DNA from: Zygnema circumcarinatum SAG 698-1b
Taxonomy: Eukaryota; Plantae; Zygnematophyceae
DNA length: 64,000 nt
Assembly (NCBI GenBank): GCA_037447605.1
Contig: CM074816.1
Coordinates: forward strand, 759,873-823,872
Direction: 5' to 3'
Every line of letters starts with the position of its first letter. The first letter of the stretch is position 1. The notes under the pieces are model-generated. The model did no database searches, had not been told where the DNA came from, and saw nothing but the letters and a program-made list of their open reading frames with translations. This document shows, piece after piece, positions 2,271-61,032 of the stretch. Position numbers and translations under genes: made by a program.

Positions 2271-5200
2271 ATGGCGGCCTTCGTGCGAGGCCTCCTCGCC
2301 ATAGCGATGCTCGTGGCGGGGGCTGTGCCTGCATTGGGTACAGGTGCGAGGGGGAGAGGGAGGGAGAGGGAGAAAGGGAGCGGGGAGGGAGGGTCGAGAG
2401 GAGGGAAGAAGGGGAGTGGGAGGGGAAGAAAGGAGGGAGTGCAAGTGTGTGAGAGAGAGATAGTTCCAGAGAGAATCGAGAGAAAGGTCAGGGGGGGAGG
2501 AAGAGATGAAAAGAGAGAGAGGGGGAGAAAGTAAGGGTGGTGGGAGGGGCGAGAGGAGGGGGTGCAAGAGAGAGAGGGAAAGAGGGATTTGGAGAGGAGC
2601 GGGGGAGGGAGAGAGAAGCGGGAAAAGGGAGAGGGAGAAGAATAGGAGAGGGAGCGGCGGGGAGAGAGAGAGCGCGCGAGAGTGAGCGGGGGGCCGCGGT
2701 GTGCGCGTGCAGGCGCGGACCTCAGTGCGTGGAGCGTGGGCGCGTTCGTGCTGGCGCCGCTGTACGGATCGGTGGCCGTACGGAACCGCGGCGGCGGTAA
2801 CGGGTCCGAGTGCGAGCTCGTGGGAGGCGGCGGCGGTGGGGCCGCGCTGCAGCCTTGCAAGAGGGAGAGAGAGTGAGAGAGAGAAGCAGAACTGAACTGA
2901 GAGAGAGAGAGAGAGCAGAGCTGAGGGAGTTGGAGAGAGAGTCAGATTAGAACGAAGTCGATGATTGTTCATAATATGAATGACAAACAAAAGCGGGGCG
3001 CAAAAGTTAGAGAAAGCCGTCCCTGTGCACTTTGCAGAGCCTTCCCGGATTGACTTTGTTGTGATGTTTTTTTCTCTCTGTGCGCAGCTTCCCTGAGTGG
3101 CACACAGGGCCTGTGGGTGCTCGCGCAAGGGCCCTCCTCCTCCTCCTCCTCCGCCTTTGCGTTCCGGCAGGCGCAGGGAAGCAAGTGCTTCGGCGTGCCT
3201 GATGGGACCACTGAATCGGGCATCGCCATAGAGATTTTTGGTGCGTCTCCTGCAACACCTTGCACTGTAGAAAGTTGAAACAGGGTCCAGATCTCCTCCT
3301 TGAAGCAAACCTCATGCCCATTTCTTTGCACGTTTGTATGTTCTGGAAGTTAAGGTTGTACATTGAAAGACGTAGCTCTGTAAACCATCGAGTTTTTATC
3401 AGCCACGGCCTTGCGGAAAAGCCAGCAGTATGACTAGAATTATATGATGGGGCTTGGTGCTAAATTTCGACGTATAGTTCAAACACTGCTCTTCTCTGCA
3501 GACTCCTCCTTTTCGCGATTAATGATTTTTTTTTTTTTTTTTTTTTTTGGGCAAACTGTCTCTGTGGTGTGCAGAGTGCGATTACAGCTCATCCCAAATG
3601 TTTTCTCCCCTATACCAGCAGTCCCCAGACCTGTCCGTGCAGTGGCAGAATGTGGCGTCGGGAAGATGCCTCGACTCGAGCACTGGGAAGGAAGGAGACT
3701 CGCTCATTCAAATGACCTGTTCTCAGAATAAGATGGCAAGTCAGCTGTGGAGAGCTCTCTCTCTCGCTGCTTTTCAAATGCTGTGTGAGTACCTTCTCTG
3801 TCTTTCTCTGATTTCTCTCATCCCTCTCTTTTTTTCTCCCCCTCTCTCTCTCCTTTCCTGTCTCTATCTGCTTTCGTTTTTTCCCTCTCTCTCACTCTCT
3901 CTCTTATCCTCTCTCCCATCCCCTTCCCTTTACATCTCTTCTCTCTACCTTCTCTCCCGACCTGTGCTTCATTGTTGGACCACTGGCAGTAGTGGTTTTT
4001 GCGGTTGACTGTGGTTGTGGTTTATATATATTACGCCAAATCGCTGAATCTTCTGAAGCTCGTGCCCATCCAGATGTGGCTTTCATCATTGACATCTCCA
4101 TTCAACAATGCATAAATGCTAATTCAGAACGGTTACGGTTTCATTCCGTGTCCAGGCGTCTGCAACTGCTCTCTTCGTCTATTAGACTCCTCCTTAGTTT
4201 CCCCTTCTTATTTTTTTTTGGTTTCTTTTTGCTTGTGCAGTTGCTACATCTCCCCCTCCCCCAAAGCCTCCCCTCCCCCCTCTGCGCCCCCCATCTCCGC
4301 CTCCTCCTCGACCTCCCCCTCGCTCTCCCCCTCTCTCTCCCACTCTCTCTCCCCCTCTCTCTTCTCTTCTCTCTCCCCCTCTCTCTCCCGCTCGCTCTTC
4401 CCCTGGCTCTTCCCCTCTCTCTCCCACTCTCTCTCCCCCTCTCTCCCCCCCTCGCTCTCCTCTTGGCTCTCCCCCTCTCTCTCCCCCTCGCTCTCCCCCT
4501 CTCTCCCCCCCTCGCTCTGCTCCCCCCCTCGAACGGCCGCCCCCTCTGAGGAGACCTCCCCCGCCCAGAAAGGCTTCACCCCCTCCGCCCGCTCCCAAAA
4601 TAGTCCAACAGCCGCCACCCTCCCTCTCTGCAGAAGGTAACCAACACCTCGACTTCGCCTTCTACCTAACCTTCCCAATAGGGGTTAGTATTTTCAGATG
4701 AATGGGGATGAATGGGGAATGTTGCATCTGGGCATGCATCGCCAGTAAGTAGGGTACATCAAAGTTTTTTTCCTTGGCCTCAAGCCCGTTTCTTCATTGC
4801 TGGTTGCATTATGGGATCTGGCAGGGGCGCATATAGATTGACAAGAAGTAAAAGGCTGCTTGTTTTCCTCAATATCTGAGAGAGCTGTGCAATAAAAATG
4901 CGCAGCGGCGGCCCTTCTCGCGTTCAAGCAGGCGGTCACAAGCGACTCTCGGAACCGGNNNNNNNNNNGAGACTCAGACTAGCAGACTCACGGCACTTGT
5001 CTCAACTGGGATACATGGGAAAGGGACGAAGCTTTTGGCTCTTCTTTTTGGGTTTTTTCGACACTGCATTGGTCTCTCAGGGGGAGCAATTAAATGTTCT
5101 GACAACCTAAGTTTCCTGTTTTTTGGAACAGTACTTTGAGTGGGAGTCAGCTGAGTGGCAGCATTTCACCTTCCATTGGCAGCCTGACTTTCCTGTCGGA

Positions 5201-8200
5201 ATTGTGAGCATCCTCACCCTCCTTGGAAATATCAGAAGTTTGCGGAGAAAAAGCCATGCTGATTTATTCTGTTATCTTCGGAAATCTCGCTTCTCTTCAT
5301 AACAATTTGTAACACCCGAGGAGGAAGCTGCCTTGCCTTCTGTCGCATGTAGGAATTCTGAGTCATTGGAATTTCTTATCAAGCGCATGTGAGGCTATTG
5401 CAAATCATGTATTGCAAAGAAGTCCTTAACTTTTCGTGTGTTTCATTCCACATGCAGGGATTTGTCAAACAATAACTTCACAGGCAGTATACCGGATTCC
5501 ATTGGAGGTCTGCAAAGCCTGAAAATACTGTATGTTGCTCCGTTTCACCCAATACTTCCAAGTCAATCTGTGCCACAATGATCTGCTGGAGTGCCCACTT
5601 TTCTTGTTGAAGCGTCGCCTATAGCCTGCCTTTTTCTCCTATGTTTAGCTGAGTCTGTGATAGAATATGCAGGAAAAGCTAGTTCAGTAGGAAGGTGTTT
5701 GGAGACATGAAGGATTTGGCTTCCTTCTAATGCCAACCTGTTGGATACTGAACAGTTGTGGAAAGGCAAGCAGCGGCTAGTCATATTGAATGGTTGCTCC
5801 TCGAATATAGCTGACGAGAGCTTTTTGGTTGCTGCCGCCTGGGAAGAGCCATAAAATGTTGACGCAGCATGGAACTTTTTTTGTGTTATTACCCCTTCTG
5901 AAAGAATAGAATATTCTGAAATCGAGAATAAAATGACAGGAGGACGGTACGGTAACCTTTTTTCCACTTGTTACAGGGACTTGTCAAACAATCAATTGAC
6001 TGGGAGCATTCCCTCCTCCCTTGGAAATGCCACTGCTCTAAGGACCCTGTGAGTGGCAAACCGGTCTCTAACCATCTCTCTGCTAACATTGATGCAGCAG
6101 AAGCTTAGGTATTGAAGAGGAATCAAATCGGAAATCTGAAATATTAGTCCTCGGGTTTTGTAAATCTTTGAAGGGCATTTAAGGATTTAAGGAACTGCTT
6201 CCACATGAAAATTGTGTCTATGGTTTGCATAAGTCTATCAGAATTCGAAAAAGAGTGTCCTTTCTGGGACAAGCTGAAGGCGTTCTCATGAGCATCATAG
6301 CATAGAGATGGGTTGGATGGTCTTCATCGTTCGAAGTTTTGCTTTATGAAAAAAAATAACTTGCCGCATATTTACAGAAACGTTGGCAACAATTTACTGA
6401 GCGGCGCCATTCCTCCAATAATTGGGACCCTGAACAGCCTCAAGTACTTGTAAGTGTGTGTGGCCTGTTTACATGGCAATAATCTCTCTCGTGCTTTCTT
6501 TATCCGTGTCTCAGAAAAAAGACTGCAGAAGAGTGAGAAGCAGAAAAATAATAAAATAAACGAAATGCAGGGCATTCTGCACCTCCGTCGAGCACACAAA
6601 GGTCAGTTTCAAGTGACTTTCTGGAATATTCAAAAACGCTTTCATCCATTGGCTCTCTCTTTTGCATTCGCTCTCACAGGACCTTATCCTCCAATCAACT
6701 GACGGGTGCTATTCCCGCAAGCCTCAGTGGGCTTTCGGCTATAAGGACGATGTAAGCAGCGCCTCAACTCATTTGAAAAGCTGAAGCTTACTCTCACGAA
6801 GCAAATGGTTTATCGTTTTTGAAGGCCTTGATCTTTATAGCTTGACCGATACAGCCCATATGCTAAGCTCAGTGCAACAAATCTGAAATTCAAAGTTCAA
6901 GTCAAATTCTCAACAGATCGCGATTCTGTGTGCTGTGCAGGTCTCTTGCAAATAATCTGCTCATTGGACCCCTAGTTTTCGACTTTGGTTTGCTCGAAGA
7001 TGCAACTTTTGATTTCAGCAACAACTACTTGTCCGGAGAATACGCCGTCAAAGTGAATGAAGACGATGTGAAGTGTACTGGCATTGATAGGAACTGCTTT
7101 TCCGGTTCAGCTGTGAGTTCATGCAGTACTCAGAGAGACGCAGCTTCCTGCGCTCTGTTCTGCAATGCAACTCAGCCTCAAGGCGCATGCGGTGGAAACG
7201 GCTTTTGTTATCTTAACGGAAGCCAACCCACATGTGCATGCGCCGCCGGCTTTGTAACCTCCGCCAATAAAGACTCCTGCGTGTTTGGTGAGTGCTACAT
7301 ATCTCTTTCCCCTTCTGAGTCCCCTTCTGAGTCCCCCTCTAGACATTGATTTGTCAAGATGGAAACTTTAACCTGCTCACATTCTGCAGACTGTTAGGTT
7401 GCACCTGTGGTGCTATAACATTTTGAGAGCTTTCAGGTTCAAGACCTGTTTTTTTTTTTCACACATTTAGAAATTCTGTGCAGAGGGCCGTGGGTCTGGT
7501 CTCAGTCTTACGACTGCCCTTATTACAAAGGTGAATCCCTATTTTCGGTATGCAAGCTCGGGATATTTGAGGAGACGGAGCGGCAAAGCTTCGTGGCAGG
7601 TCGCTATTGCGTGGAATTGGACGGAGGAGGGAGCTGTTCAGAACATCAAAGATCAAAAAAATTGCAGTAAGAGCACTTTCTTTGACCAGATCCTTGTTCA
7701 ACTCGACTGCTGCGTGATGTTACTTTTTTAGCTCGTTAGAAAGACTGCTCCTATGATCCCACCTAGAAGCTGTGCCATCTTCTTCATTAATGAGCTCAAC
7801 TCTAATCCTCATCTCATTTTCCTGCATACAATACCGTCCGTCCATTCCATCACAAGTACTTATCCTGTTCTGATGAGTGTTCGTCATGCTGAACACAATC
7901 TTTATGTTTTGCATAATTGTAGGTACATGTTGGATATTCGCTCCGATATCTGCGATAGAAAGCGCCCTGTACATCGCAAGCGGTGGGCAGTCTCCGGTGC
8001 CGCAATTGGCGGAGGATCAGGTCCTGACCTGCTCGGGGAGCAACAAAACGTGCGGGGCCGGAGGGTGGCCCACAGAGACGCTCGAATATGCCTTGAGCAA
8101 CACCTTACTGCTGCAATCCAACTTCGTGGACTCTTCCAGCTGCGGACAGGTAAGAACATTCTAGTAGTGATACGATCATTTTTGTCACTGCATCTACTCA

Positions 8201-11200
8201 TGGCGTTCGCCATTCACAAGACTCTCTAAAAGCTCTGTCAACTGTACTAGGCAGCTTTTCCCCGAGCTTACAGTTTGTGTGCGGAGTCTGCAGGGCGACA
8301 ATGCGCTGAGAGTGTCCTCCTACGAGCAGGTGCAGTTCAACGGTTGGCTCGGCCTCCTGCTCATCCTGCAGCAGCAAGTGGCCGTTGTCACTATTGAGGC
8401 GTCCGGCGATAGCTTCATCAATTACAACGGAGTAAGTCAGTGTGAATACTTCTGTTACCTTTCGTCCACATACTTTTTCTATACTTAATCAGTTAATCTT
8501 GACCATCCGAAGATCGAGACCTAGACCAAGGAACTGACTCGGAGGTCCGACATGGCAGCATTGATGCCTCAGCGACCTTTCATGGAACCCACAAAAACCC
8601 TTCGCATCCCCTTCGCATTTGAGTGAAAGTCCACAAAACAGTCCCCGCTAAAGCTACTCAAGAGGTCTACTTTAGCACCCCTACTCAGAGTATGTAGATC
8701 TGCTTCAAGTTCACACCCTCGCTTTCTAGAACCATCATAACTTTGCATTTTTACCATTCTGCTTGCTGCAGGGGGTGTTTGACGATGAAGACTGCTTTTC
8801 GAACGGAGTGGATCACAGCGTGGCGGTGGTCGGATACGACCTGAGCGCGGATCCACCCTTTTGGATCCTCCGCAACTCGTGGGGGCGCAACTGGGGCGAG
8901 CAGGGTTACATGCGCCTCAAAATAACCGCCGGGGCGGGGATATGCGGCATCACCAGCCTGCCCGCGCTCATGCCCGTCCTCCGGCCCCAAGGTGGGACTT
9001 GAGATGGATGTGGATTGGATATGCGTTGTACTTTTCGAGCATCCACAACGGTAGACTGGAGGGTCGTATGGGAGCATGCAATTAGCAGTTGGAAAGGCCT
9101 TCTGCTTTTTGTTGAGAGTCGATACGCCCATCCTTATCTGAGTTGATCACTGAGCCTCAAAGAAGCGCTTCGCTACCCATTTCTGCACCTTACGGCAAAT
9201 CTCGGAATTGGAAGCGTCTTCTCATGTTGCCCTCCCTTCGACATTCGTTGAGTGCAGTTGGCGATCCATGCTTCAGGAATAACTATGCGAGTGTGGTCCT
9301 CAAGAATGTGAATGGCCCCGGCGGAGTGAACCCCTGTGGAAACGGCATCTGCATTCCTGCGGGGTCGACCAACCTCTGCCACTGCTCGGAAGGCTTTGTG
9401 GCGGTCACTAACAACGACTACTCGCAAACCTGCGCACCCCGTGAGTGCTTTTGCTTCAACAAAGGGCTCTTCCGTGAGAAATGTCAAACAGTGAATGTGG
9501 TCACAGCAGATATCCCCTATGCCTGTGTGTGAATATTCTCACCATCTTCACAGAGCCTCCTTCTCAAGTTCTGTTGGCGGTCGTGCAGTGTCTCCATGCA
9601 AGTTTGCTTCACGGAATCCGTGCGGCGTTGGAGAGTGTTTGGATGCCGCGGCGCCTCTGGGAACGTACCAATGCTTGTGCCCCATCGGCTATGCGCCCGA
9701 CTCCCCGGAGGGCACGCTCACGTGCTTGCCAGGTAGATATCTCCTCATCACTCGTAAAAAAATGCCAAAGCACTTCATTACAGTATCCGATACCATTAGC
9801 CTAAAATAGCCATTTGTCATTCTCAAGCCTAATTTAACCGTTGCTGTGACCCGTCGGTTATCATCCTTCCTGAGAACTGTTCTTGAAATATCGAACGAAA
9901 GTTTTCTATATGGAGTACTCCTTTGCAGGCGGATCGCTATGTCCTATGAATATGGTACTCGTTTTGGTTTCAGTTTAACGGACGGTTTTCCTTCAGTATT
10001 ACTGACGATGTTTTAAGTCTGACATGCCCTAACCACCTTAACTGAGAAACTTATCAAACAAGAGGATGGGAGGGAGGGCAGTTTGAGAGACTTCTCTGAC
10101 TGACGGGTAGCGTTGTTCGTGCAGCGGCGATGGTGGAAGGACAGCAGAATTTCACAGTGCCCATTGGCACAAACATAAGTTGCCCTGCCGTTTACAACAT
10201 GTATGGCATCAACAAAACCACGTTTTTGGAGCAGAACAAAGTAAGTATTGGTGAACGCTTCTTGCCCTCTCTAGCTCAGTCTTGCAGAAACTCCGAATAG
10301 GTCTGTGTGGGCGCATCAACTCTCCGAAACACTAAAAGGTTATCTCCACGGTTTTTTTTTACCGCTGAGCCAAACCATCATTGCCTCACAAAATGACTTC
10401 CAATGGGAATATGAAGCTGACGCAGACCTTCACATCGTGCAGAACTTGAGTTGCCAATCGCCACTTCCAGAAGGCACGGTTGTGAATGTCACCAATTTCC
10501 AGAACTGCTCCGTGGTGTACGCCGTCAATGAGGTGAGCTCCGTTTGCATGCTCAGCTCTCTGTTAATTCTTGTCTCCGTTCTGTGTGCCTACAGCTCGCT
10601 TTTACTCCATTGGTCTGCACTCATCTTAAAGCACTATGAGGCGGGCGAGGGCTGCTTTTAAGCTCACCTTCTGTCCTATCCATGCTGCAGGGTGACACGT
10701 GCGACTCCATCGCAACAGTGTTCAACGTGACTTCAATATCCGGCCCCGATTCACCCAATCCTGATTTGGACTGCTCACAGCTCATGCCCTTCCAACAGGT
10801 ATGCCTGCTTAGATACGAATGTCGCTCTGGCTTTTCCAATAAGAGCAGCTCGTTAGTCACGATTCATCTTTGCTTCATTTGATGGTGATACTTGGTGGAC
10901 TTGTTATGCAGGTCTGCATTCAAAGAGGGCCCCTCGAATACACAGGGCCTTGCGTTCTGCCATATGATGTTCAGCCTGACGAATCGTGCTTTTCGATAAC
11001 AGCAAAGTATCTCGCTGGTGATATTTGGAAGTTTTATAAGCTCAACCCTGGCGTCTTTTGCGGCAAACTGCTGCTTCCTACCAGCGGCGGTGTGGCACTT
11101 GGCCAACAGGTGAGACGCTCCTCAAAGCAGATGAACGTTCAACGCCTTTCAGTTTCATAAATCTGTAATTTCCATGTTGGAGCATGTGCTTCGAGTCGTC

Positions 11201-11527
11201 TGCCTCCTAAAGTCCTGCTCGAGGTGAGTTTTCAGTCGAAGGATATTGAGTGTTTGGCTTGAGTGATGTGCTCAGTACATGCTCGTCTAATTTTTTTTAT
11301 GTCACGATGCGAGCGAGCAGGTCTGCCTGGAAGCAGGGGATGTGGGAGTGAGTCAAACCTGCACGGGCAAGTCCGTTTCTCTGAGGAATGGAAACAGCTG
11401 TGCTAGTCTGAAGAACTGCTTCACAAAAAAGGACACCTTCAAGAAATTGAATAAGTTCGCGTGTACCGCAAAAGCATTGAAGGCAAAGACGCATTTGTGC
11501 GTTCCTCCTCTCAGCAGATGTAACTGA
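2271..11527 (+). CDS. Secreted multidomain protein: signal peptide, ricin-B lectin, Pro-rich (SPP) stalk, LRR, EGF-like, papain-family (C1A) cysteine protease, 2x EGF, about 4x LysM (about 22 exons)
   Basis: ATG 2271 MAAFVRGLLAIAMLVAGAVPALG (signal peptide). Ricin-type repeats: KCFGVPDGTTESGIAIEIF|ECDYSSSQMF and WQNVASGRCLDSSTG...CSQNKMASQLW (3088-3784). Pro-rich exon 4241-4636. LRR N-cap AALLAFKQAV (4906). Five 72-nt LRR exons at 5132-5203, 5458-5529, 5977-6048, 6378-6449 and 6680-6751 (e.g. DLSNNQLTGSIPSSLGNATALRTL). Exon 6941-7287 ends in a Cys-rich EGF-like module and splices in phase 1 into exon 7484-7666. C1A motifs: WNWTEEGAVQNIKDQKNC|STCWIFA, DHSVAVVGY, WILRNSWGRNWGEQGY (7484-8991). 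EGF exons 9258-9440 and 9589-9732. LysM-like exons 10125-11527 (e.g. GDTCDSIATVFNV...NPDLDC). Stop TGA at 11525-11527. An N gap at 4959-4968 hides part of the LRR N-cap, and junctions around 2860-3088 and 3785-4240 are uncertain. Confidence 0.85.
4959..4968. other. Assembly gap (10 N) inside the LRR N-cap exon
   Basis: Run of 10 N; the reading frame after AVTSDSRNR cannot be followed across it. Confidence 0.99.
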
Positions 11528-12344
11528 AATAGGTATATGCGGGTACGTACTCGAGAATATGCCGTCAAGGGTATGTTGCTGGAGGGCCATCCATTATCCA
11601 ATTGACAGTATGTAATTAGAAGGATATCTTGTTGAGGTTATGTCGGGATCGATAAGTCGACTCGCATTGCAGAGAAATTTTCTTCAGGTTTTATCATCTT
11701 GCCTCACTTTATGTAAAAACTCTCGACGGTGAGGAAGCCATCTGTAAGTGAGAAAAGGTGGCAAAGAGTGGCAGCTCCGCGGTTAGTTTGTCCAACAGGG
11801 CGGGCGGGCATTGCACTGCGAGGGTGGGACAGGGCCAGCCCGCCGCTGGTGCCCTGCAGAAGCAGCACTTCCATGTTGTCTCGTTCCGTTAAACAGCGAC
11901 AAGAGCGTGCCTTCCATGCACTTTGAGCCCATGGATCGATCGGTGATGCGGCGAGCCATGCGAACCTCGATGAGGGCAGGCTCGGAATTTGGTTCTACTC
12001 TGATTCGCTCTCATAATCGATTGGCTCGATGGTGTTAGAAAAAATGCTTTCTTGCTTGCGTATGCATATGTAACACATGTATGGTACGAAATGGAGGCCA
12101 CGCATGGACTCTTGCTTCGTAGCACATGTGCTTCCACAAAGGGACATCTGCTTCAAATTAATGATTTGACACTGTCAAATTACGCATGCCCATGCAGATA
12201 TTGATATGGTTTATGATGAAAATAGAGTTCACAACCAACATTGTACAGTGGCTAGGCACACATTGTCGTTGGCCATGTTGCCAGCATTTTCATGTTGGTA
12301 GCGTGCACATGCCATGGGACCTACCGCGTAGGTTGTACGGCTAT

Positions 12345-58532: not shown

Positions 58533-61032
58533 GACATACGTGAAGTCTAACATAATACCGCCCGCCTATTGGTAACACGAACCTCGTATTTGCAAAATCA
58601 AGATTTTCGCCCCATATTTGCCAAAACCATGGCGAAAATATGAGGACCCCCTACTGTACAGACGACGCGTACGGACACGCAAACACAAGCGGTGGAGGGA
58701 AGTCCATGTCACAACAACTCTCCCTCCCTCCCATTCATTCTCTCAAGAAAGTGCTCTCCACCATGTGCCATGCAGCATCAATCAAATCTATAAATAAACC
58801 ATTAAATCGCTGAAAATACATGCCATAATGCTGCGGATGCTGGTAAGAAAGCAATAGTAGCAACATTAGCTGAGAGCTATCCCCTCCATAGCCATGGCTT
58901 GGGCATGTTTTGCTCTTTTTCTTGCCAGCTCTTCTATGAGACCCTCGCTCTCATCTTCCGCTGCGGGAACATACTCTCTATATTGAACCCATGATAACAT
59001 GGCCAAAACTTCTCCAATCATGGCTTGCCAGCTGTCACGCTGGCGATGGCCCGATTATTCCAAAAAGTCCAACGCCCATGACTCAAACCTGAACAAAACC
59101 AGAATTCCAAGCAGGCGAAAGTTCAGAAATGTTGAACAAAACAATGTCGAAAGAGACTCAAACATACAATTCTTGAAACTGACGTTTGATGGCCTTGCCA
59201 TCGTGAGTTCAATATACCATCCTTTTCTCTTTTCTTCTTGAAACTTGATAGCTTCTATGATCTTGATGCGCTACATGCGGGCGACAGAAATGGGGAGATT
59301 TATCACAGTTTAACAGGAGGCTATTTACTCAGAATCAGAAGTTGATTGTGAGAGCCCGGTCAAATGTCCGAGTTGAGTCCCGAGGGGGCCGACCCGCTCT
59401 GACTGGACCGACTGCGAGCCGGCTTTGGCAGGACACGTGGGCACGTGCCATTCGCTGAGGACCGAGTCTGGCTGCAGATCTAACGGTTGTCGTGGTGCAA
59501 TTTTGCAAGGAAATGGACGGCTGCGATTTAATGCACGTGTAGCGAAACGCTACAGTCACCCCAAGGGGGAAGGGTTACTTAGAGCCCGGCGTGGCTTTAT
59601 GTTTCCATCCAATGCAGTACCTAACGGTTAGAGCATCGGATACCCTATAGGACGACGGAGGTCCTAGGTTCGAACCTTAAGCACTGGTTCACCAGTGGGG
59701 CCGCCACATAATCTCTATGGGCCCCACGTCAGCGGCCAAGGTCCCCTCCTCTCAGCGTAGAGGAGGATCACGGGCTAACGGNNNNNNNNNNGACATACGT
59801 GAAGTCTAACATAATACCGCCCGCCTATTGGTAACACGAACCTCGTATTTGCAAAATCAAGATTTTCGCCCCATATTTGCCAAAACCATGGCGAAAATAT
59901 GAGGACCCCCTACTGTACAGACGACGCGTACGGACACGCAAACACAAGCGGTGGAGGGAAGTCCATGTCACAACAACTCTCCCTCCCTCCCATTCATTCT
60001 CTCAAGAAAGTGCTCTCCACCATGTGCCATGCAGCATCAATCAAATCTATAAATAAACCATTAAATCGCTGAAAATACATGCCATAATGCTGCGGATGCT
60101 GGTAAGAAAGCAATAGTAGCAACATTAGCTGAGAGCTATCCCCTCCATAGCCATGGCTTGGGCATGTTTTGCTCTTTTTCTTGCCAGCTCTTCTATGAGA
60201 CCCTCGCTCTCATCTTCCGCTGCGGGAACATACTCTCTATATTGAACCCATGATAACATGGCCAAAACTTCTCCAATCATGGCTTGCCAGCTGTCACGCT
60301 GGCGATGGCCCGATTATTCCAAAAAGTCCAACGCCCATGACTCAAACCTGAACAAAACCAGAATTCCAAGCAGGCGAAAGTTCAGAAATGTTGAACAAAA
60401 CAATGTCGAAAGAGACTCAAACATACAATTCTTGAAACTGACGTTTGATGGCCTTGCCATCGTGAGTTCAATATACCATCCTTTTCTCTTTTCTTCTTGA
60501 AACTTGATAGCTTCTATGATCTTGATGCGCTACATGCGGGCGACAGAAATGGGGAGATTTATCACAGTTTAACAGGAGGCTATTTACTCAGAATCAGAAG
60601 TTGATTGTGAGAGCCCGGTCAAATGTCCGAGTTGAGTCCCGAGGGGGCCGACCCGCTCTGACTGGACCGACTGCGAGCCGGCTTTGGCAGGACACGTGGG
60701 CACGTGCCATTCGCTGAGGACCGAGTCTGGCTGCAGATCTAACGGTTGTCGTGGTGCAATTTTGCAAGGAAATGGACGGCTGCGATTTAATGCACGTGTA
60801 GCGAAACGCTACAGTCACCCCAAGGGGGAAGGGTTACTTAGAGCCCGGCGTGGCTTTATGTTTCCATCCAATGCAGTACCTAACGGTTAGAGCATCGGAT
60901 ACCCTATAGGACGACGGAGGTCCTAGGTTCGAACCTTAAGCACTGGTTCACCAGTGGGGCCGCCACATAATCTCTATGGGCCCCACGTCAGCGGCCAAGG
61001 TCCCCTCCTCTCAGCGTAGAGGAGGATCACGG
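58533..61032 (+). repeat. 1,241-bp direct duplication (58533-59773 and 59792-61032) straddling a 10-N gap
   Basis: The copies look identical at offset 1259 (the ORF track repeats exactly); N run at 59782-59791. Confidence 0.95.

Follow-up and report, generated by a model that had tools for sequence, protein, structure and literature searches.

A probable modular gene for a secreted papain-like protease in the zygnematophycean alga Zygnema circumcarinatum

In the genome of Zygnema circumcarinatum SAG 698-1b, a region on the forward strand is probably a gene whose product, a modular protease of the papain-like C1A type, is secreted and soluble and belongs to a family of the Zygnematophyceae. 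The region (4906-11527, +) lies in a window of 64,000 nt (GCA_037447605.1, CM074816.1:759,873-823,872, forward strand), and the coordinates of all exons and joints are positions in this window. The gene was examined at 2271-11527 (+). Splice-site and phase reading gave an uninterrupted frame of 839 residues on 17 GT-AG exons (5132-11527, +), which encodes, in this order, six plant-type LRRs, an EGF module, a C1A domain, two further EGF modules, and four LysM repeats. Upstream of this frame lie an interrupted LRR cap exon and a putative ricin-B lectin with a Pro-rich stalk.

Exon chain and splice junctions

The features of the region are listed in Table 1. The exons named in the initial annotation, which had proposed that a lectin, LRRs, a papain-like protease, and LysM repeats are fused in a single gene, do exist as canonical GT-AG units with compatible phases. 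The frame stops just after the fourth LysM repeat, with no hydrophobic tail, and direct reading identified no transmembrane helix, GPI signal, or kinase exon in or after the frame ending at 11527, in agreement with the earlier view that the protein carries no membrane or kinase segment.

Table 1. Exons and other features of the gene region, in window positions
Feature	Position	Strand	Remarks
Exon 1	2271-2343	+	ATG and signal peptide; hydrophobic core, Pro-Ala-Leu-Gly end; exits in phase 1; direct reading
Exon 2	2713-2872	+	Ricin-B-like subdomain 1; Cys...Gln-Gly-Leu-Trp; donor uncertain (2872, or 2796 with acceptor 3088)
Exon 3	3098-3240	+	Ricin-B-like subdomain 2; acceptor 3098 or 3088; direct reading
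Exon 4	3575-3784	+	Ricin-B-like subdomain 3; Gln-Leu-Trp; Pfam Ricin_B_lectin below cut-off
Exon 5	4241-4636	+	Pro-rich stalk; Ser-Pro4 motifs; phase 1 at both ends
Exon 6	4906-4958	+	Start of LRR N-terminal cap (Ala-Leu-Leu-Ala-Phe-Lys...), interrupted by gap; direct reading
Gap and doubtful bases	4959-5167	.	Assembly gap 4959-4968 plus 199 bases without public-run support as assembled
LRR 1 exon	5132-5203	+	72 nt, phase 2; candidate exon, resembles first LRR of relatives
LRR 2-5	5458-5529, 5977-6048, 6378-6449, 6680-6751	+	One 72-nt repeat per exon, phase 2; Pfam LRR_1
LRR 6, Cys-rich LRR C-cap, and EGF1	6941-7287	+	Exits in phase 1; joints 6751>6941, 7287>7484
Linker and start of mature C1A domain	7484-7666	+	Phe-Arg-Tyr-Ala-Ser at 7543-7557; oxyanion Gln at 7654-7656
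C1A exons	7923-8149, 8294-8431, 8772-8991	+	Pfam Peptidase_C1; joints 7666>7923, 8149>8294, 8431>8772
EGF2, EGF3	9258-9440, 9589-9732	+	Phase 1 at both ends; joints 8991>9258, 9440>9589, 9732>10125
Four Cys-rich LysM repeats (five exons)	10125-10240, 10443-10532, 10691-10798, 10912-11109, 11321-11527	+	Stop at 11525-11527

Contigs from four public runs (X1-X4), none of which is on record as RNA, were aligned over 4540-10539. In these contigs, GT..AG joints were present at twelve of the predicted junctions (5529>5977 through 10240>10443), and 10532>10691 was indicated by a loose contig end in X1. Among the LRR exons, the joints 5529>5977, 6048>6378, and 6449>6680 were seen. The twelve joints include the one between the LRR/EGF exon and the protease (7287>7484), which the initial annotation had singled out as critical and which is carried by a single X4 contig at depth 6. 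X1 contained exon words almost exclusively: 10 of its 30 bins had depth, all of them exon-bearing, its intron cover consisted of a single depth-2 contig, and a 770-base contig spanned four junctions. X2-X4 contained 73-80% of the sampled words, introns among them. Exon depth in the run contigs was 2-5 times intron depth. Minus-strand GT-AG joints occurred at 7633>8272 in X2 and X3 and also at 9427>9541 in X2, and these joints point to RNA.

Relatives, modules, and protease core

Over 833 residues, the frame aligned in one piece with P0042, a complete transcriptome ORF, at 39% identity (E = 0); one-piece alignments were also obtained with P0036, P0035, and P0014 of Mesotaenium. The relatives that aligned end to end, at 36-39% identity, were single proteins of Mesotaenium and Closterium, together with transcriptome ORFs. 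Twelve of the 16 introns share both aligned column and phase with the Closterium gene CLOP_g11113, and the intron positions of LRR 2-5 are the same as in Closterium. A phmmer search with the LRR6/EGF1 module showed that relatives carry this module ahead of Peptidase_C1. The run joints, the collinear relatives, and the conserved introns all bear out the earlier proposal that LRRs, EGF modules (one before and two after the protease), an apparently active C1A domain, and LysM repeats are encoded on one secreted, non-membrane chain. When ten relatives were compared with the whole window by tblastn, no family exons were found outside 5100-11600, nor was the missing exon end that run contigs join to 5458. 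The best identity in the protein libraries was 42-43%, and the gene's own annotated protein is apparently absent from them.

The family numbers over 100 entries in the databases, each labelled "unnamed" or "hypothetical", with dozens of copies per Closterium genome, and was found only in Zygnematophyceae (Mesotaenium, Closterium, and three transcriptome sets). Its layout consists of a signal peptide, an LRR cap, plant-type LRRs, an EGF module, a short, conserved pre-segment with a FRYAS motif, a cathepsin-L-like domain, two EGF modules, and three or four LysM repeats. Pro-rich spacers are present in Mesotaenium members of the family. The proteins ME000166S01720 (P0014, Mesotaenium endlicherianum), CLOP_g11113 (P0040, Closterium), and P0042 resemble the Zygnema protein in LRR-to-LysM collinearity, in the FRYAS motif, and in the absence of an I29 propeptide, but relatives of this type have neither a ricin-B domain nor an N-terminal Pro-rich stalk. 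In many zygnematophycean relatives, a legume-lectin domain instead follows the LRR/EGF part, ahead of the protease. Because the modules are bounded by phase-1 introns, the family would most likely have diversified by exon shuffling; relatives have a legume lectin in the equivalent position. The initial annotation had left room for the architecture being already widespread and characterised; the LRR-C1-LysM combination is indeed widespread in the Zygnematophyceae but uncharacterised, and our literature search found no paper describing the zygnematophycean LRR-C1A-LysM family.

The six LRRs are 24-residue LxxLxLxxNxLxGxIP repeats of the plant-specific type, five of them on 72-nt exons, and Pfam LRR_1 matched the exon at 5458-5529 just above the cut-off (E 2.6e-4; 20.9 bits versus 20.6). 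The Pfam EGF model also matched single exons (19 and 26.9 bits; E 5.8e-6). The LysM exons of the window remained below the PF01476 cut-off of 20.9 bits, with scores of 13.4 and 12.4, because an intron splits each repeat, whereas the collinear LysM regions of relatives scored above the cut-off (P0014, 69.6 bits; P0035, 92 bits; P0042, 36-44 bits).

Single exons of the protease core matched Pfam Peptidase_C1 (PF00112) with E values of 9.5e-18 and 7.7e-8. The residues tested, in C1A numbering, were Gln19, Cys25, His159, Asn175, and Trp177, and all were present: direct reading and alignment showed an intact catalytic set (Gln 7654-7656, Cys 7928-7930, His 8814-8816, and Asn 8874-8876) with the Asn-Ser-Trp motif, and Cys was likewise retained at the positions that form the three disulfides of papain. 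In 14 of 52 family members, Ser replaces the catalytic Cys. The I29 propeptide (PF08246; ERFNIN/GNFD) was found neither in the exons of the gene nor in the scanned or listed relatives (108 checked). In the alignment, EGF1 is separated from the N-terminus of the mature enzyme by approximately 42 residues, which contain the FRYAS motif, and this motif is kept in 36-48 of the 52 family members. Cathepsin-L-like C1A enzymes, in contrast, have an I29 propeptide of approximately 100 residues with ERFNIN/GNFD motifs; the nearest analogy to the FRYAS segment is the short propeptide of cathepsin X, which has 38 residues.

The structure was considered in an AF2 model of the homologue P0042:324-780 (39% identical and collinear) rather than of the Zygnema protein itself. 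Its pLDDT was 84.9, with about 91 in the FRYAS segment. The mature domain of the model aligned with chymopapain over 216 residues (Z 30.9, rmsd 1.6), corresponding to the two-lobed papain fold, and the values for chymopapain and actinidin were alike (Z about 31, rmsd 1.6). In fold and catalytic residues, actinidin, chymopapain, bromelain, and cathepsins S and K are the same as the P0042 model, with 32-36% identity to it. The alignments of procathepsin K and procaricain extended approximately 58 residues further, into the EGF1/linker part of the model. Judging from the aligned ranges of this homologue model, rather than from coordinates, the FRYAS segment appears to sit roughly where a zymogen propeptide lies; if it does, activation cleavage there would split the LRR/lectin half from the protease-LysM half.

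The 5' part and alternative readings of the gene

The cap exon that begins at 4906 ends at the assembly gap after 53 bases, whereas its Closterium counterpart is 130 nt long (phase 1 to 2). Only the first 17 residues of the cap, for which relatives carry PF08263 (LRRNT_2), stand ahead of the gap. Contigs of X2, X3, and X4 connect 4958 to 5168 via 48 different letters, and the assembled bases 4969-5167 had zero depth in X2 and X4 and a depth of only about 4 in X3, where one low-depth contig enters at 4969 from AAC-rich sequence. In the read form of 4958-5168, the frames of the cap and the LRRs are shifted by one base relative to each other; the 48 replacement letters may hold the true end of the cap exon, in phase. 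The joint 5203>5458, between LRR 1 and LRR 2, was in none of the run contigs, and 4969-5460 and 4640-4958 showed no self-similarity. A frameshift reading of 5069-5131, in which a Cys-x9-Cys segment is fused to LRR 1 on the assumption that the T run at 5120-5125 is wrong by one base, was rejected, as no contig has an indel there.

The ricin-B module ahead of the protease is the least secure part of the finding. Exon 4 alone matched Pfam Ricin_B_lectin (PF00652; E 1.3e-4) with 22.6 bits versus a cut-off of 29, and exons 2 and 3 individually had no Pfam match. Two Gln-x-Trp motifs and one Gln-x-Phe motif can be read directly in the lectin exons, and a PDB search with the lectin gave weak matches (E 0.07-0.7), five of the six being R-type beta-trefoils. 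The open frame of exon 5 is no evidence for coding, because all three frames are open there. The spliced lectin and stalk had no blastp match in any of the 150 collected relatives, and a homologue search with the ricin exon (3526-4005, residues 17-86) was blank, which says little because it was limited to proteins of 88-280 residues. What ties the lectin and stalk to the LRR part is therefore phase compatibility and the absence of an alternative start exon. Of the single-gene fusion initially proposed, the LRR-EGF-C1A-EGF-LysM part stands, but the inclusion of the ricin-B domain and the Pro-rich stalk does not follow from the present data, given the gap, the unseen joint 4636>4906, and the relatives that start with a signal peptide and LRR cap. 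On balance we lean slightly towards the ricin-B beta-trefoil and the stalk (2713-4636) being phase 1-1 cassettes that are included in at least some transcripts, a view favoured by the lack of another start exon between 3785 and 4905 and by the Pro-rich spacers of Mesotaenium members.

It is less probable, but a serious possibility, that there are two transcription units, with a lectin-stalk gene from 2271 to approximately 4700 apart from the LRR-protease-LysM gene, or that the cassette is optional and exon 1 is spliced straight to 4906. The relatives open with a signal peptide and LRR cap, and in the Closterium gene the signal peptide adjoins the cap at a phase-1 intron. Because exon 1 and the cap exon share phase 1, skipping would preserve the frame. 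No run contig contains the joint 4636>4906 (Pro-rich stalk to cap), yet unspliced contigs traverse 4540-4958, and without the donor at 4636 the stalk frame runs into a stop at 4699-4701. A ricin-B domain, moreover, occurs in none of the approximately 150 public relatives collected. However, the cap exon itself supplies neither a start codon nor a signal peptide, and a search between 3785 and 4905 gave no convincing alternative first exon with a signal peptide; the lectin exons, all in phase 1, lie between the gene's sole signal-peptide exon and the LRR cap and share their strand, and a joint that is missing from contigs does not prove its absence from transcripts.

The run contigs also bear on whether the window copy itself is expressed. 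Spliced contigs differ from the window at 6016, 10153, and 10187, where unspliced contigs of the same run match it, and the window letter at 9391 was found only in X2. The spliced contig that reaches 5458 has 21 upstream letters that are absent throughout the window, and exact searches of the window with the loose-end strings gave no match. The mismatches and the foreign exon end mean that the spliced contigs may derive from a near-identical second copy or allele, and the window copy could then be a silent or 5'-damaged duplicate, as the out-of-register cap and LRR 1 might also indicate. We regard such a duplicate as rather unlikely: the 839-residue frame is undamaged across its 17 exons, the 21 foreign letters may fit in phase within the 48 replacement letters, and a variant contig (X3 record 16) shares 266 intron bases (8992-9257) with the window without mismatch, so that the two forms would have the same structure and represent alleles, strains, or a very young duplicate. 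It is very improbable that the "spliced" contigs stem from DNA in X2-X4, namely from a processed retrocopy without introns. These runs include introns and their library kind is not on record, and the spliced contigs have single-letter differences of their own, but the almost exon-only content of X1 with its long multi-junction contig, the minus-strand joints, and the excess of exon depth all argue against a retrocopy. Even a retrocopy would record an mRNA that was once spliced with the same exon chain.

Possible function and known systems

"Peptidase_C1 + LysM" proteins of Chlamydomonas have been reported among the chlorophytes (PMC2728734), and a lectin survey reported the C1A + LysM combination as lost in vascular plants (PMC6362431). 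The chlorophyte proteins are similar to the Zygnema protein in that a papain-type protease is joined to LysM in a secreted, green-algal protein, but, compared by description, they differ in that LRR, EGF, and ricin-B modules are not reported there. They were not retrieved by searches seeded from zygnematophycean proteins. In Volvox, a cysteine protease that bears chitin-binding repeats is reportedly induced by wounding and by pheromone. The 24-residue LRRs, the putative LRRNT-type cap, and the Cys-rich LysM repeats resemble those of the land-plant LRR-RLPs/RLKs and LysM-RLKs/CEBiP; unlike these receptors, the Zygnema protein has no transmembrane helix, kinase, or signal for a GPI anchor, and its LRRs and LysM repeats are on the same chain as an enzyme.

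The module order suggests glycan-anchored extracellular proteolysis, in defence or in wall remodelling, as the function. Anchoring would be provided by the LysM repeats together with the N-terminal binding modules, attaching the enzyme to a surface of GlcNAc-containing or other glycans, possibly that of a microbial wall or of the wall or mucilage of the alga itself, and the anchored protease would cut proteins at that surface. The FRYAS segment is probably a mini-propeptide that keeps the enzyme latent or aids its folding. The "bind, then proteolyse" sensor-effector idea of the initial annotation may hold, but the propeptide-like position of the FRYAS segment would complicate it, as activating cleavage there would part the LRR/lectin half from the protease-LysM half. 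It is improbable that the protein is mainly a lectin or an adhesive or wall-structural protein (e.g., in conjugation), with proteolysis secondary or absent. The binding modules make up most of its length, the Ser-Pro4 motifs read in the stalk are typical of algal wall glycoproteins, and over a quarter of the members examined have Ser where the catalytic Cys would stand; the Zygnema copy, however, keeps every catalytic residue and the disulfide cysteines of active papain-like enzymes. A bolder reading of glycan-anchored proteolysis, to which we give little credence, is a kinase-free recognition-and-attack system, in which LRR, ricin-B, legume-lectin, and LysM cassettes, exchangeable via phase-1 introns, target a latent protease, and ligand binding at the N-terminus controls release of the FRYAS mini-propeptide. 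If this were true, recognition would directly switch on proteolysis.

Three of the pillars of surface immunity in land plants, namely LRR and LysM ectodomains and papain-like proteases that are secreted, occur there on separate proteins. In the lineage of algae most closely related to land plants, LRRs, LysM repeats, and a papain-like protease are probably united on one secreted chain. The family thus offers a testable case of protease targeting through glycan- and protein-binding modules, a papain group in which the I29 propeptide appears to have been replaced, and a likely plant-lineage case of module exchange at phase-1 introns.

Exon chain and evidence for one LRR-to-LysM gene

The gene region has a eukaryotic layout (short exons, GT-AG introns 150–450 bases long), and its exon chain was reconstructed manually and then checked with a script. 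The core frame encodes, in order, six plant-type 24-residue LRRs (five of them on 72-base exons), a Cys-rich cap with EGF1, a 42-residue linker, a papain domain spread over four exons, EGF2, EGF3, and four Cys-rich LysM repeats spread over five exons.

Features of the gene, in window coordinates
Feature	Position	Strand	Basis
Start codon and signal peptide exon	2271–2343	+	reading of sequence
Ricin-B-like subdomains, three exons	2713–2872, 3098–3240, 3575–3784	+	reading of sequence
Pro-rich stalk exon, Ser-Pro4 motifs	4241–4636	+	reading of sequence
LRR N-terminal cap, beginning only	4906–4958	+	reading of sequence
Core frame, 17 exons, 839 residues uninterrupted	5132 to stop 11525–11527	+	script-checked splicing

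When single exons were compared with Pfam, matches were obtained to Peptidase_C1 (E = 9.5e-18 and 7.7e-8), EGF (E = 5.8e-6), LRR_1 (E = 2.6e-4), and Ricin_B_lectin (E = 1.3e-4, 22.6 bits vs a cut-off of 29). The LysM exons scored low (12–13 bits) because every repeat is split by an intron. The papain domain, which the initial annotation took to be active, has all of its catalytic residues, with Gln at 7654–7656, Cys at 7928–7930, His at 8814–8816, and Asn at 8874–8876; the cysteines for the three papain disulfides are also present, by direct reading and in the alignment. Neither a hydrophobic tail nor a kinase occurs in the 839-residue frame, in agreement with the earlier view that the product lacks transmembrane and kinase segments. 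The G+C content falls from ~0.65 at the 5′ end to ~0.43 in the LRR part. Low-complexity DNA with strong strand asymmetry occupies 2140–2700 and 3790–4520, and is GA-rich in intron 1 and on the promoter side and CT-rich in intron 4 and the stalk exon.

That the LRR-EGF-papain-EGF-LysM core is one product of a real gene is well supported on three independent grounds: splice joints in contigs of public sequencing runs (X1–X4), one-piece alignments, and shared intron positions. GT..AG joints were found in the run contigs at twelve predicted junctions, from 5529/5977 through 10240/10443, including 7287/7484, which had been singled out as the critical junction and is joined in one X4 contig at depth 6; X1 has a loose end indicating 10532/10691. 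A complete transcriptome ORF of 1041 residues (P0042) aligned in one piece with frame residues 1–833 (39% identity, E = 0), as did P0036 (38%) and two Mesotaenium endlicherianum proteins, P0035 and P0014 (36%), with the 839-residue frame. The Pfam order in these relatives is LRRNT_2, LRRs, EGF, Peptidase_C1, EGF, and LysM. Moreover, 12 of the 16 introns agree in both aligned column and phase with those of CLOP_g11113 of Closterium sp. NIES-67, including the phase 2 set with one LRR per exon and the four phase-0 LysM introns.

None of the four runs is recorded as RNA. X1 is RNA-like, with contigs almost exclusively on exons and one 770-base contig spanning four junctions; X2–X4 also contain introns, at about one-third to one-half of exon depth. 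The spliced contigs differ from the window at 6016, 10153, and 10187, positions where unspliced contigs of the same run agree with it, so the spliced molecules may come from another, nearly identical source: an allele, a strain, or a very young duplicate. The window and variant forms have the same structure, because 266 intron bases of one variant contig match the window without mismatch. The exon chain is validated for this pair taken together rather than for the window copy alone. At 8103, X2, X3, and X4 have A where the window has C (Thr to Asn in a protease exon), which reflects a strain difference or else an error in the assembly. On the minus strand, X2 and X3 contigs omit 7634–8271 and one X2 contig omits 9428–9540, with ends CT..AC (GT..AG on that strand), suggesting spliced antisense transcription through the protease and EGF exons (7633–8272, 9427–9541). 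Depth at 8790–8932 is 270–480, vs 20–100 elsewhere, and loose ends there resemble other papain genes (e.g., ...Asn-Tyr-Asn-Gly-Gly-Val-Phe-Asp-Asp-Pro); this conserved His/Asn exon gathers contigs from highly represented paralogues.

The assembly gap and the ricin-B cassette

The assembly gap at 4959–4968 interrupts the LRR-cap exon 53 bases in. Approximately 75 further coding bases are expected beyond 4958, because the corresponding exon of CLOP_g11113 has 130 bases (phase 1 to phase 2). Contigs of X2, X3, and X4 bridge 4958 to the right flank, which shows the scaffold join to be physically correct; they do so via 48 other letters and resume at 5168 instead of 4969. The assembled stretch 4969–5167 has no depth in X2 and X4, and in X3 a single contig (depth ~4), which enters 4969 out of AAC-rich sequence. 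In the read-supported form, the cap and LRR frames are one base out of register, with 49 letters between the two codon borders. The joints 4636/4906 and 5203/5458 were not found in contigs of the public runs, and in the spliced contig extending to LRR2 (5458), the 21 letters upstream of that point are absent from the entire 64-kb window. Given the replacement, the register shift, the missing joints, and the foreign letters, neither continuity nor reading frame can be taken as established across the gap, and the assembly is doubtful for the first half of the LRR1 exon. Another assembly gap lies at 59782–59791.

Inclusion of the ricin-B and stalk cassette with the core is unproven, and we lean only slightly towards it. 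Its exons lie on the same strand as the core, between the sole signal-peptide exon and a cap exon without a start; no alternative first exon was found between 3785 and 4905, and the exon borders of the lectin half are all phase 1. Splicing of exon 1 directly to 4906, bypassing the cassette, would work equally well, because the ricin block (exons 2–4) and the stalk (exon 5) are both phase 1 in and out. The public relatives all begin with a signal peptide and the cap, and a ricin-B domain was found in none of the ~150 collected. Of the single-gene fusion originally proposed, the LRR-to-LysM part stands, whereas the link to ricin-B and stalk lacks a joint in the run contigs over 4540–10539.

A lineage-restricted protease family

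Relatives were gathered by phmmer with the LRR6 and EGF1 exon, followed by two homologue searches. More than 100 proteins combine Peptidase_C1 with LysM and/or LRR and/or legume lectin domains; nearly all are from Closterium species (~20 per genome), Mesotaenium (5), and three transcriptome sets, and they are annotated solely as "unnamed protein product" or "hypothetical protein". The family to which the gene belongs is large, lineage-restricted, and uncharacterised. The novelty first attributed to the architecture is thus reduced, as the core layout already exists in these database proteins, but it is uncharacterised and ricin-B accompanies it in none; what is new is a variation on lectin-tethered C1A proteases. 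The catalytic position holds Cys in 38 of 52 members, as in the window gene, and Ser in 14, which may form a non-cysteine or inactive subfamily. Six of these 14 also lack the following Trp.

In both the window gene and CLOP_g11113, the module borders are all phase-1 introns (signal peptide/cap, EGF1/protease, protease/EGF2, and EGF2/EGF3, with ricin/stalk/cap and EGF3/LysM in addition in the window gene), and introns within modules are in phase 2 for LRRs and in phase 0 for LysM and part of C1. As read from the two gene structures, this is a classical exon-shuffling signature, and it fits a swapping between members of LRR and legume-lectin modules and, in the window gene, of ricin-B. CLOP_g11113 (L001, 3001–11471) also has one LRR per 72-nt exon; it joins EGF3 and the first LysM half in one exon, whereas these are separate exons in the window gene.

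No I29 propeptide was found in the family members collected. A motif, Asn-x-Phe/Tyr-Phe-Arg-Tyr/His-Ala-Ser-x-Gly, lies ~35 residues ahead of the catalytic Gln; 36–48 of the 52 members retain it (Asn-Pro-Tyr-Phe-Arg-Tyr-Ala-Ser at 7534–7557 in the window). An AlphaFold model of residues 324–780 of P0042, built from a 52-sequence alignment, had a pLDDT of 84.9 (~91 over the motif) and a pTM of 0.83. Mature papain-like enzymes match model residues 120–343 (chymopapain: Z = 30.9, rmsd 1.6, 216 residues), whereas for two zymogens, procathepsin K and procaricain, the alignment covers residues 21–340 (274 aligned residues; Z = 31.6 and 30.6, rmsd 3.9 and 3.4), so EGF1 and the linker lie roughly at the propeptide position. 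From these aligned ranges on a homologue, we infer that this part may act as a mini-propeptide.

Possible mode of action

A Volvox cysteine protease with chitin-binding repeats, reportedly described by Amon et al. in 1998 as wound- and pheromone-induced, is the nearest functional precedent. A literature search found no paper uniting LysM, papain, and Zygnematophyceae, and none on LRR-C1A fusions. C1A joined to LysM is on record for Chlamydomonas (PMC2728734) and, in a survey noting that vascular plants did not retain the combination, for non-vascular Archaeplastida (PMC6362431).

The gene product is secreted and soluble, a mosaic whose papain active site is intact. Its LysM repeats, with the lectin or LRR modules, would anchor the enzyme to glycans, GlcNAc-containing or otherwise, or to a protein ligand, and the anchored protease would cleave surface proteins, either microbial ones, in defence, or those of the alga's own wall or mucilage, in remodelling or conjugation. 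If the Phe-Arg-Tyr-Ala-Ser segment is a removable propeptide, activation would split the LRR/lectin half from the protease-LysM half, which would weaken the idea of binding and cutting on one chain where the N-terminal modules are concerned; for LysM the idea would be unaffected.
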